Both the position numbers and the translations under genes were made by a program. DNA of 63,502 nt, from NCBI GenBank assembly GCA_011109175.1, contig RDEW01000009.1, forward strand, positions 67,735 to 131,236, given 5' to 3'. This stretch comes from Dicyema japonicum. Taxonomy: Eukaryota > Animalia > Dicyemida. Under the pieces are notes generated by a model. It did not search any database. It saw only the letters and a program-made list of their open reading frames with translations, and had not been told where the DNA came from. Shown one piece after another: positions 7,395-32,855 of the stretch (positions are counted from its first letter, which is position 1; every line of letters begins with the position of its first letter).

Positions 7395-9914
7395 CGTGTC
7401 CATTCAAAATGGCCTCCATACAAAACGGCCTCCATTCAAAATGGCCTCCATTCAAAATGGCCTCCATTCAAAATGGCCTCCAATTAATTTTTTCAGGTTT
7501 TGGATAAGTTCATCAATAAACATCACGAGATTTTAGCGAAACGACATCTTTAGGTAAAAAAGTCATCTTTTTTAAATCTTATAAAAATTGATTTACCAAG
7601 GTCCTCGACATCTTTAGGTAAAAAAGTCATCTTTTTTAAATCTTATAAAAATTGATTTTAAGGAGTCCTATGGGTGAGCGGAACATTTTACCAAGGTCCT
7701 CGACATCTTTAGGTAAAAAAGTCATCTTTTTTAAATCTTATAAAAATTGATTTTAAGGGATCCTATGGGTGAGCGGAACATTTTACCAAAGTCCTCCAAA
7801 CCCTATGATTTTAAGATACTAATTGACTTTGGAATAAAAATTAATTATTTTTATTAAAACTAAATTTAATAAGTTATTGTCTCTTTTAATTTCTTTTATT
7901 ATAATAAAACTTTTGAATAATTTAATTAATTAATTGATTCACTATTGCATGCCGTTTCTTGTTAACCAAAAGGGAAATAGAAGTTTAGAACATGATGGAA
8001 ATCTTTATCATTTAAAATACAGGAAGGGACATATCACATATTGGAGGTGCTCAGATCGTACTTGTCCTGGATCTGTAAAAACTATTCAATCCTGTGATGA
8101 AGTTTGGAGTCTGAAGCAACATAATCATCTTCCAAGGAGTGAATTTGTCAAGAGAGCCTTAATACGGGAGGACATAAAGCAGAAATCACTCTTATGTGAT
8201 ATGGGTCCTAGACAGATTATTAATAATTCTCTGCTTGGACAAAATTTGACAACTATTGCTTTGACAGGGACTCATTCTTCTCTGGAACAACTGATTAATA
8301 GAACAAGAAAAAGTATCCCACACGAAAGTGATGATTCAGTTCTTAATATTGAGGAGAATTTAATGTATACCTTACGAGGGCATAGATTCTATCAGTTTGG
8401 ACACAGTTTTCGCCAAAATATTGGTATATTAATGATTAACTTATCAGATGTTGAGACAAATATGGTTATTTTTTTTAATTCTGAAATGACGACACCATTA
8501 AAAAATCATAAAATATGGTCTATTGATGGGACTTTTTCTGTCTGCCCTCTTCCTTGGAAGCAATTATTCACAATATCGGTAATAATTAATCACCATGTAA
8601 TTCCAATAATTTTCTGTCTTTTAACATCAAAAACTGAAAATGAATATGACACAATGCTTCAAATAATTAAACGTCTCATTCCGGATTTAGAACCAAGAGT
8701 TATTGTCTCAGATTTTGAAAAAGGAGCAATAAACTCTTTTCAAAAATCATTTCCAAACGCACGGATAAATTGCTGCATGTTCCATCTAGGACAAAATATT
8801 AATAAAAAAATATTGGAACTAGGAATTTTCAACGACATAAATAATGAAGATATAAATAGGTTAAATGTGATTTAAAATTAACGATAGATTTGTAAAACTG
8901 TTGAAATGCCTCTCCTTTATTCCTACACATACTGTAAAGAACACTTTTGATTGGATAGTGTCGAGATCAGATTTTCCTGTGATTCTAACTCCATTATATC
9001 AATATTTCTTGATCAATTATATCGGAAATCAAGAAAATGGATTAATTCCAAGATTTCCAATTAATTATTGGAATAATCTGGATAATCTATATGAGGACTT
9101 ACCTCGGACAAATAACTCCATTGAAGGCTGGCACAACGTTTTTAGAAGTACATTTGGGACACTAAACAAGACGCCAAGAAATTTTGTAAAGAAATTGATA
9201 AAAGAAGAAGGCATAATGATTAAATTCTTAAGATTACAAAATGGAGAAAAAATTCTTAGAAAAACTAAATATATCGCTTTATCTGAGAATATATTGAGAT
9301 TTGTTCAAGAACAAATATTACTTAATATGGATCCGACAGACTATATATTCAATTTAGTAGAATATGTGTTCTATTAACATTTATAATCATTTTCCTTTTT
9401 TTCTTTTGAAAATAAATATTTCATTTTAAACTTATATAAAAATATTAAAAAAGATGACTTTTTTACCTAAAGATGTCGAGGACCTTGGTAAAATGTTCCA
9501 CTTACCCATAGGACCTGTTAAAATCAATTTTTATAAGATTTAAAAAAGATGACTTTTTTACCTAAAGATGTCGAGGACCTTGGTAAATGTTCCACTTACC
9601 CATAGGACCTGTTAAAATCAATTTTTATAAGATTTAAAAAGATGACTTTTTTACCTAAAGATGTCGAGGACCTTGGTAAAATCAATTTTTATAAGATTTA
9701 AAAAGATGACTTTTTTACCTAAAGATGTCGAGGACCTTGGTAAAATATCTCGTGATGTCTATTGATGAACTTATCCAAAACCTGAGAAATTTAATTGGAG
9801 GCCATTTTGAATGGAGGCCATTTTGAATGGAGGCCGTTTTGAATGGAGGCCAGTTTGAATGGAGGCCATTTTGAATGGAGGCCATTTTGAAAGAGGCCAT
9901 TTTGAATGGGAACC
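7395..9914 (+). mobile_element. Apparently intact MULE (Phantom-like) DNA transposon with modular foldback TIRs
   Basis: 8-bp TSD CTTTATGC (7387-7394, 9915-9922). Inverted ends carry 16-bp CCATTCAAAATGGCCT arrays (5 left, 7 right) plus ~52-bp subterminal repeats (3 left, 4 right). Internal transposase gene. Confidence 0.92.
7949..9377 (+). CDS. FLYWCH-MULE DDE transposase, 458 aa after splicing
   Basis: Exons 7949-8423, 8448-8859 and 8888-9377 total 1377 nt = 459 codons with no internal stop. FLYWCH-like YWRC-x4-C...HNH, IDGTF (D1), VSDFE (D2), CMFH, RTNNSIEGWH (E). Confidence 0.88.
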
Positions 9915-22290: not shown

Positions 22291-22313
22291 ATATCATTGA
22301 TTTTAAATTATTA

Positions 22314-23749
22314 CAGGGTTTTCCTATTTATTTAATAACTTTGTCATAAAATTTAATAACTTTGTCAAAAAATTTAATAACTTCGTCATAAATTTAATAA
22401 CTTTGTCAAAATGTTTAATAATTCGTCAAAATACTTAATAACTTTGTCAAAATGTTTAATAACTTTGTCAAAATGTTTAATAACTTTGTCATAATGTTTA
22501 ATAACTTTGTAAAGATTATTATTTATATTTTTGGGATTATTATTTATATTTTTGGGATCATTATTTATATTTATTGGATCATTATTTATATTTATTGGAT
22601 CATATCGTCAAAAAATACAAAAATACAGGAAGTTTTTGCTTCAACAAAAAATAATTGTGGACGAAAGAAAAAACTTAATTCATCGGACATCTTATTTTTG
22701 ACTAAAAAAAATTGAAGAAGATGCTTCATTTACTCTGAAGAATTTAAAAAATTCTTTATTTGATGTGCAAAGAAAAAATGTCTCTTTATCGACAATAAAT
22801 AGGACGCTAGATACATTTGGATATAGTTTTAAAAAGATTCAATTTGTACCTATGGCGAGAAATTCTACAATAAATATGGAAGAAAGATCTGCCAGAAAAA
22901 TAATTGAAGTTGATAATCAACGGCTTATTTTTATAGACGAAATGGGAGTCAATTGTTTGATGAGATCCAAATTTGGAAAATCTATAAAAGGAGTTACTTC
23001 GAAAAAATGTACTAGAAACACAAGAGAGAAAAATTTCTCTATTTGTGCTGCTATTTCTGTGGACGGCCTTTTACATTACGGAATCAATTCTCTTATCGCG
23101 CGGAGACGTTCATTGATTTTGTAATACAGCTTAATTATAAGCTTGAACATGCAGGGAAAAAAAGTATGGTTATATATTATATTTAAGACATGGTATTGAT
23201 ATGTGACAATGCATCAATTCACAAGAGCGAACAATTAAAAAAATGTTGTATTCGGAACTGGTATCCAATTAATTTTTAACGTGTATAGGGTATGAATTGT
23301 ATTTTTTGCCTCCTTATTCTCCTCCATTTTATCCAAATTAAGAGTTTTTTTCTGTTTGAAAAAATAACATCGAAAAGAAAAAATTGTAGGAACTCTGAGG
23401 AATTAATAATCGCAATACAAAACATCGGAGAAATTCCATCAGATGTGTGAAATAATTTGTTATAGCCACATGCGGAAATATTTAGTTAAAGCATTGGCTA
23501 ATGAAGAATTTTAATTTATAGTTGTTTTTTTCAATTAATTATAAAAATTGGTTTCTTTTAATTTGACCTTTGACAAAGTTATTAAACATTTTGACAGAGT
23601 TATTAAGTATTTTGACGAATTATTAAACATTTTGACAAAATTATTAAATTTTATGACAAAGTTATTAAATTTTATGACAAAGTTATTAAATTTTTTGACA
23701 AAGTTATTAAATTTTATGACAAAGTTATTAAATAAATAGGAAAACCCTG
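22314..23749 (+). mobile_element. Tc1/IS630-type DNA transposon, copy 1 (N-terminal coding deletion)
   Basis: TA|CAGGGTTTTCC...GGAAAACCCTG|TA. ~190-bp TIRs made of 21-bp arrays. FIDEMG, CDNASIH and LPPYSP motifs. Introns at 23164-23187 and 23261-23288. Confidence 0.92.
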
Positions 23750-23877
23750 TATAAAATGTCGCAAATGTACTCAATGTGGATCAAAAAAATTAAATAAAAT
23801 TATAACTTTATTATTTATTAAAAATATTTTTGGAAATAAATAAATTTAAACACACTTCTAATCTGTCATGTTTTAAA

Positions 23878-31532: not shown

Positions 31533-32855
31533 CAGGGTTTTCCTATTTATTTAATAACTTTGTCATAAAATTTAATAACTTTGTCAAAAAATTTAATAAC
31601 TTTGTCATAAAATTTAATAACTTTGTCATAAAATTTAATAACTTTGTCATAATGTTTAATAATTCGTCAAAATATTTAATAACTTTGTCAAAATGTTTAA
31701 TAACTTTGTCAAGGGTCAAATTAAAAGAAACCAATTTTATAATTAATTGAAAAAAACAACTATAAATTAAAATTCTTCATAAGCCAATGCTTTAACTAAA
31801 TAGCTCCGCATGTGGCTATACAAATTATTGCACACATCTGATGGAATTTCTCCGATGTTTTGGATTGCGTTTATTAATTCCTCAGAGTACCTACAATTTT
31901 TCTTTTTGATGTTATTTTTCCAAACAGAAAAAAACTCTTCAATTGGATTGAGTTGAGGATCTTCCAAATTTGGATCTCATAGAACAATTGACTCCCATTT
32001 CGTTTATAAAAATAAGCCGTTGATTATCAATTTCAATTATTTTTCTGGCAAATCTATATATTTCTTCCATATTTGTGTAGAATTTCTCGCCATAGGTACA
32101 AATTGAATCTTTTTAAAACTATATCCAAATGTATCTAGCGTCCTATTTATTGTCGATAAAGAGACATTTTTTCTTTGCACATCAAATAAAGAATTTTTTA
32201 AATTCTTCAGAGTAAATGAAGCATCTTCTTCAATTTTTTTAGTCAAAAATAAGATGTCCGATGAATTAAGTTTTTTCTTTCGTCCACAATTATTTTTTGT
32301 TGAAGCAAAACTTCCTGTATTTTTGTATTTTTTGACGATAGAAACAACTGTCTGATAGTTAATACAGATGTCTTCGCTTATTTTTGAATAAGCCAACCCT
32401 GCTTCATATTTATTTATAATAAGTTTTCGGTTATCCTCGGATACAGTAGTATTTTTGTTTTTGTAACTATTCATTTAATTCAATTTGCGCTAAAATTTGT
32501 ATTTATAGGAACTTAATAATCCAATAAATATAAATAATGATCTAATAAATATAAATAATGATCCAATAAATATAAATAATGATCTCAAAAATATAAATAA
32601 TAATCCCAAAAATATAAATAATAATCTTTACAAAGTTATTAAACATTTTGACAAAGTTATTAAACATTTTGACAAAGTTATTAAGTATTTTGACGAATTA
32701 TTAAATTTTTTGACAAAGTTATTAATTTTGACTATTAAATTTGACAAAGTTATTAAATTTTATGACAAAGTTATTAAATTTTGACAAAGTTATTAAATTT
32801 TTGACAAAGTTATTAAATTTTATGACAAAGTTATTAAATAAATAGGAAAACCCTG
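31533..32855 (-). mobile_element. Tc1/IS630-type DNA transposon, copy 2 (DDE core deletion)
   Basis: Same TA-flanked CAGGGTTTTCC termini and 21-bp arrays. Intact N-terminal HTH region (MNSYKNKNTTVSEDNRKLII...) and QLNPIEEFFS...EEF* end. The middle is deleted. Confidence 0.92.

Follow-up and report, generated by a model that had tools for sequence, protein, structure and literature searches.

The element at positions 22314-23749 of the window (the whole 63,502-nucleotide stretch of Dicyema japonicum DNA analyzed here) is very likely a decayed copy of a three-exon, Tc1-like DD34E transposase family with two spliced, probably gained micro-introns. In the functional form of the family, the transposase gene is predicted to have three exons with two spliceosomal GT-AG micro-introns between them, one of 24 nt and one of 28 nt, both of which the host spliceosome would remove to give a 332-codon enzyme. 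The introns would have been in place before the family amplified; since its nearest known relatives lack them, they were most probably gained on the lineage that gave rise to this Tc1-like family.

The element and its ends

As judged from its sequence, the interval 22314-23749 is a TA-flanked Tc1/IS630-type element of the Tc1-like DD34E kind, belonging to the IS630/Tc1/mariner superfamily. The first-pass annotation had recognized a Tc1/IS630 transposase here, and this identification is borne out by DDE_3 matches, TA flanks, inverted repeats, and the DD34E arrangement. The parts of the element outside the coding region are as follows.

22312..22313, no strand: left TA target-site duplication (from the sequence)
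22314..23749, plus strand: entire element of 1436 bp, dead and 5'-deleted, with termini CAGGGTTTTCC...GGAAAACCCTG
22314..22513, plus strand: left inverted end, about nine tandem 20-21-nt units (TTTAATAACTTTGTCAAAA-like) (repeat family D1, inverted pairs I1-I6)
22514..22602, plus strand: second 21-nt tandem array, on the left side only (families D3-D6; alignment with full-length copies)
23569..23749, plus strand: right inverted end, the same 21-nt units reversed (family D2, inverted pairs I1-I6)
23750..23751, no strand: right TA target-site duplication (from the sequence)

The terminal inverted repeats are 98% complementary over the arms 22312-22395 and 23668-23751, and 73-98% over the longer arrays. 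Among the family copies that we fetched, TA flanks were found at 34 of 34 termini, and the alignment indicated that the element termini are kept in all full-length copies, which are 1.5-1.75 kb long. The number of 20-21-nt units in the inverted ends differs from copy to copy (window ends 22314-22602 and 23569-23749; loci L002-L020), and these tandem units may serve as multiple putative transposase binding sites. Besides, the second 21-nt array that occurs only on the left side varies from 4 to about 10 units across copies, with the maximum in L004.

Coding remnants and lesions of the window copy

Alignment with the full-length copies divides the coding region of the window copy into three exon pieces and two intervening segments.

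22603..23163, plus strand: exon 1 remnant with the second helix-turn-helix and the first catalytic Asp (22936-22938) (alignment, translation, and Pfam)
23164..23187, plus strand: putative intron 1, 24 nt, GT...AG, phase 1, with an in-frame TAA at 23184-23186; GTATGGTTATATATTATATTTAAG
23188..23260, plus strand: exon 2, 72 nt in intact copies and 73 nt in the window copy, with the second catalytic Asp at 23205-23207
23261..23288, plus strand: putative intron 2, 28 nt, GT...AG, phase 1, not a multiple of 3; GTATCCAATTAATTTTTAACGTGTATAG
23289..23514, plus strand: exon 3 remnant with the original stop at 23512-23514 (alignment and translation)

In a six-frame translation of 22314-23749, pieces of a Tc1/IS630-type transposase were spread over three frames, and Pfam matches to HTH_Tnp_Tc3_2 and DDE_3 fell at 22702-23121, within the exon 1 remnant. 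The second catalytic Asp lies in the motif MVLICDNASIH, on the short coding piece between introns 1 and 2, both of which begin with GTAT. The first-pass annotation had placed segments of 24 and 28 nt on either side of this Asp, and we found them at the same coordinates and with the same sequence, each running from GT to AG; it had also predicted that retention of the first segment introduces a TAA ahead of the second Asp, which is the case. The 1-nt insertion that it had postulated in the A run at 23237-23243 was confirmed as private to the window copy, which has seven A residues, whereas 23 of the 25 aligned rows have six and one row has five. Its peptide reading, GYELLFLPPYSP, needs correction to GYELYFLPPYSP.

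The window copy is dead, as it has no ATG, five or more frameshifts, one of them caused by the extra A, and a TAA in place of the catalytic Glu codon. The array at 22514..22602 stops at a deletion junction where about 160 bp are gone, among them the ATG together with the first 45 or so codons, and the first helix-turn-helix is missing as a result of the deletion. In comparison with full-length copies, the exon 1 remnant shows deletions of 6 nt and 4 nt as well as two +1 insertions, and in the exon 3 remnant the catalytic Glu codon has become TAA at 23339-23341, together with two further +1 insertions. Much of this damage, i.e., the loss of the ATG and about 45 codons, four more coding frameshifts, and the changed Glu codon, had been overlooked in the first pass.

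Intact copies and the predicted transposase

Two copies, L002 (G000:C157) and L003 (G000:C331), are open in all three exons under the standard genetic code. A ciliate origin, with TAA and TAG read as Gln, was also considered and was rejected because the exons are intact under the standard code and the assembly statistics agree with D. japonicum. In L002 (G000:C157:378470-380064), whose copy length is 1595, exon 1 has 703 nt (234 codons plus 1 nt) and is followed by a 24-nt intron 1, a 72-nt exon 2, a 28-nt intron 2, and an exon 3 of 2 nt plus 73 codons and the stop; the exons total 999 nt, i.e., 332 codons plus the stop. L003 is open likewise, and its first split codon differs by one change. 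At this locus (G000:C331:243506-247454), the first ~58 codons are also present as a partial duplicate farther upstream (C331:246175-246348), and the element measures 2012 bp.

The exons of the intact copies contain the motifs DEMG, CDNAS, and NPIEE, and in homology searches run exon by exon the Pfam profile DDE_3 was matched colinearly, by exon 1 up to profile position 72 (residue 225 of 234), by exon 2 at 81-100, and by exon 3 at 108-146, the last with a score above the Pfam cut-off (33.4 versus 28.6 bits). The N-terminal region contains a bipartite helix-turn-helix, for which HTH_23 scored above its cut-off, while HTH_SB (E value of 1.6e-8) and HTH_Tnp_Tc3_2 (E value of 6.7e-7) were both under their curated cut-offs; its best PDB match was the PAI subdomain of Sleeping Beauty (E value of 4e-4). 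Counting through exon 2, the split codon, and exon 3, one finds 34 residues between the second Asp and the Glu, so that the DD34E reconstruction made in the first pass holds on intact copies. If intron 1 were retained, translation would stop after 241 codons, and retention of intron 2 would shift the frame ahead of the catalytic Glu.

Copies, derivatives, and probable past activity of the family

In the genome searched (G000; 67,542,437 b in 377 contigs), a DNA search gave at least 57 matches to the element at 85-96% identity, and searching with the exon 1 protein yielded 157 matches; only 2 of the at least 57 copies are open. The assembly of Dicyema japonicum has been described as 67.5 Mb in 377 scaffolds with 36.7% G+C (PMC6736024). 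Both intron segments were present in all 25 aligned rows spanning the region, barring copies with later deletions; these rows correspond to 24 independent copies, since L025 and L027 are one overlapping place. The GT...AG boundaries of both introns are kept in nearly all copies. A copy reading through these positions, which the first-pass annotation had named as a finding that would speak against splicing, was not encountered: all 24 independent copies keep both segments, and no copy of the family free of introns came up in either the DNA or the protein search of the genome. Being present in every copy, the introns would be older than the amplification of the family.

We considered whether weaker protein matches on C332 (two) and C13 represent an older sister family, and rejected this since they are decayed copies of the same family (88-92% DNA identity). 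For this reason, the introns can be dated only as preceding the amplification. A further weak protein match, on C333, is a 46-nt fragment only.

The window contains a second copy of the family.

31533..32855, minus strand: second window copy with a 340-bp internal deletion that removes both introns along with the second Asp, whereas the ATG (32474) and QLNPIE (31955) are retained

Derivatives with the same deletion breakpoints occur at at least four loci (window 31533-32855, G000:C331:185558-186164, C312:725247-725852, and C359:14601-15210), and the copies in the window and in L029 have different flanks. This derivative looks like an amplified nonautonomous form, and its being shared by at least four loci points to mobilization in trans.

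Copies lie 1.2-5% away from the majority consensus. The ratio of nonsynonymous to synonymous changes (N/S) was 1.9 for variants found in three or more copies versus 3.5 for singletons (Fisher P = 0.068), which weakly hints at purifying selection on a master lineage. Divergence among copies is equal in introns and exons, as expected for dead copies, and gives no independent support for the introns. Taken as it appears in the genome, the family would be a young, many-copy cut-and-paste transposon that was probably active in the past and whose present-day activity is uncertain.

Comparison with intron-free relatives

The nearest known proteins have 41-47% identity to the transposase. A word search retrieved two uninterrupted sequences, P0001 and P0002, of 336 and 338 residues with 44-47% identity, and a contig of metagenomic DNA, L043, carries an uninterrupted open reading frame of 335 codons. 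When relatives were compared with L002 by tblastn, intron 1, if read through, showed up as exactly eight inserted codons, one of them a stop, and the frame switched after intron 2. Exon-wise BLASTP placed the exon ends, split codons, and exon starts on residues 236, 237, and 238 of L043 at the first junction and on residues 260, 261, and 262 at the second. The first-pass annotation had directed attention to foreign relatives of the family, and in P0001, P0002, and L043 there is indeed zero gap at both junctions; the Asp-to-Glu spacing of the intact copies also equals that of P0001 and L043. P0001 and P0002 are Logan contigs and, if they are RNA assemblies, are uninformative on introns, leaving L043 as the sole DNA-level relative free of introns. 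L043 and L046 (metagenome Ga0307474) are the closest DNA-level relatives and are AT rich (27-35% G+C).

Two other Tc1-like families were found in the same genome, with about 28% identity to the present one.

L031:1427-2524 and L032:1117-2223 (minus strand): intron-free Tc1-like family, 366-369 codons, open frame
L033:1332-2363 and L034:1382-2404: intron-free Tc1-like family, 341-344 codons, open frame

Both are uninterrupted through the D, D, and E residues, and several of their copies are near identical; judging from such open copies, these two families are possibly still active. Since both are uninterrupted, introns are not general to Tc1-like elements in this host. The region adjoining the L031/L032 family consists of short tandem repeats (L032:2144-2818, minus strand, and L036; KSKVGLTKSKV... 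in one frame), and repeat-built ends may be common among the Tc1-like elements of the Dicyema japonicum genome.

The two segments as probable host-type introns

The segments at 23164-23187 and 23261-23288 are very probably real U2-type introns of the host kind, specific to the lineage and most likely gained. Given the dinucleotide content of the element, the chance that two inserts defined by homology would both run from GT to AG is about 4e-6; allowing each boundary to slide by 3 nt raises it to about 2e-4. Introns in Dicyema sp. have a median of 27 bp, and two-thirds of them are below 30 bp (PMC6543705), splice signals in D. japonicum are reduced to GTa and AG (PMC13644364), and intron shrinkage in the host is genome wide (PMC6736024, PMC6543705). 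The lengths of 24 and 28 nt fit the mode of host intron sizes, which is about 26-27 nt. We also identified two 26-nt GT...AG introns in an HSP70 gene of the host (contig C73), where conserved HSP70 sequence sets their positions. To our knowledge, the introns of dicyemids and myxobolids are the shortest known among animals.

The HSP70 introns were read by inspecting junctions under the guidance of sequence conservation; a generic search for host introns by stop-free paths had been dropped because it over-called spurious introns. At the first exon junction of HSP70 locus L096 (G000:C73:24200-26400, minus strand), the frame changes at ~505-525 of the reverse strand, and no GT...AG candidate was found between the conserved YKGQQ and TPEEVSS. 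This junction could be a noncanonical intron, an assembly frameshift, or a mark of a pseudogene.

We also weighed the view that the segments are not spliced at all, in which case old insertions would have killed the transposase and the family would be nonautonomous, moved in trans by an intron-free transposase. That nearly all copies are broken fits this view, as do the deletion derivatives, by which the family can evidently be moved in trans. However, it would leave to chance, at about 4e-6 to 2e-4, the exact GT...AG ends, the host-mode lengths, and the zero-gap colinearity, and it would not lead one to expect two copies, L002 and L003, open over 332 codons in a long-dead gene. Moreover, the genome searches found no intron-free copy of the family that could supply such an enzyme, and the other Tc1-like families are only ~28% identical and have different ends. 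We therefore regard unspliced insertions as a most improbable account, and splicing of the two segments as the preferred one.

If the segments are spliced, they might act as a control device, with retention of intron 1 giving a 241-codon DNA-binding fragment and skipping of exon 2 giving an in-frame protein without the second Asp, either of which could damp transposition, much as retention of the third intron does in the P element. The geometry is suggestive: both introns are in phase 1 and exon 2 has 72 nt, so that skipping keeps the frame, and intron 1 is a multiple of 3 yet has an in-frame TAA. Equal phases nevertheless arise by chance in one case of three, the splice sites (GTA...AG) are of the usual host kind, the two other Tc1-like families in the genome do without introns, and a 3n intron with a stop beside a non-3n intron is also expected if transcripts with retained introns are simply cleared. 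Such a control function seems to us quite unlikely. The related proposal of the first-pass annotation, i.e., convergent splice control of DDE assembly, finds no backing either, because the other Tc1-like families assemble the DDE triad without introns and the splice sites are ordinary.

Origin of the introns

Gain or shrinkage after long residence had been offered as alternatives in the first pass. Gain is favored, since the relatives and the two other Tc1-like families are intron free. The competing history, in which the introns were inherited in a longer form and shrank with the miniaturization of host introns, while the sampled relatives either lost them or are assemblies of spliced RNA, is possible but unlikely in our estimation. 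It accords with the genome-wide shrinkage of host introns (PMC6736024, PMC6543705), with the possibility that P0001 and P0002 are RNA assemblies, and with the existence of Tc1-type elements that have an intron, such as Minos with one of 60 bp (PMC2874221). Nevertheless, the open reading frame in metagenomic DNA L043 is uninterrupted across both sites, and the exons are colinear with the DDE_3 profile, which derives largely from genes that lack introns. The intron-free state is also the usual one in the IS630/Tc1/mariner superfamily, which counts further against inheritance. Thus, gain in this lineage rather than loss elsewhere appears to be the better reading of these comparisons.

As to the mechanism, an origin by tandem duplication received no support in our test, in which similarity between the introns and the flanking exons was not significant (P = 0.15-0.65 versus shuffles); for the downstream flanks, 7-28% of other windows of the element scored equally. 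We also examined whether the introns of the Tc1 and MULE elements go back to one source and rejected this, as no similarity to window 7900-9450 was detected. The matching 24/28-nt sizes in the MULE of the window look like a coincidence within the host size mode, because the intron sequences are unrelated.

A more far-reaching reading is that the transposons of D. japonicum record recent intron creation, i.e., that this Tc1-like family gained its 24- and 28-nt introns de novo once it had entered the dicyemids, in parallel with unrelated transposon superfamilies in the genome. We hold this tentatively, as a possibility somewhat short of a probability. If it is true, intron gain and its mechanism could be studied on dated, multicopy genes in an animal with ~26-nt introns. 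A bolder addition to it is that the symmetric 72-nt exon with the second Asp might work as a cassette for a catalytically dead regulator.

Relation to known systems and significance

Introns in the genes of DNA transposons are well known; what is notable in the Dicyema family is the size of the introns and the contrast with intron-free relatives. The family shares with Tc1-like DD34E elements of the Tc1 and Sleeping Beauty type the TA duplication, terminal inverted repeats, paired-like helix-turn-helix, DDE_3 domain, and DD34E signature, but differs from them in that its transposase is split by introns of 24 and 28 nt and its ends are 200-290-nt arrays of ~21-nt tandem units. In the literature that we searched, no paper on the genes of dicyemid transposable elements was found.

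The closest named analogue is Minos of Drosophila hydei, a Tc1/mariner element with 254-bp inverted ends, whose transposase gene consists of two exons and an intron of 60 bp (PMC2874221). The two are of similar size, and both combine long inverted ends with a transposase gene that is interrupted by spliceosomal introns; Minos has that single 60-bp intron and the Dicyema family two, of 24 and 28 nt, bracketing a 72-nt exon with the second Asp. The P element is likewise a DNA transposon that yields an active enzyme only after splicing (as is predicted here) and in which a retained intron leads to a truncated protein. It belongs to a different superfamily, and regulated retention of its third intron was reportedly demonstrated by Laski, Rio, and Rubin in 1986, whereas in the Dicyema family such retention would be a prediction from intron geometry.

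There is a practical lesson for annotation, in that repeat and gene pipelines that ignore introns below 30 nt score such transposases as dead. For the family itself, the predicted gene structure implies a dependence on the unusual spliceosome of its host. This would restrict its horizontal transfer into ordinary animals, which are not known to splice introns of 24-28 nt. Among animals, the gain of an intron is a rare event and difficult to catch, and this Tc1-like family of Dicyema offers a clean and datable candidate case of introns acquired by one lineage, in a host whose introns are about the shortest known.
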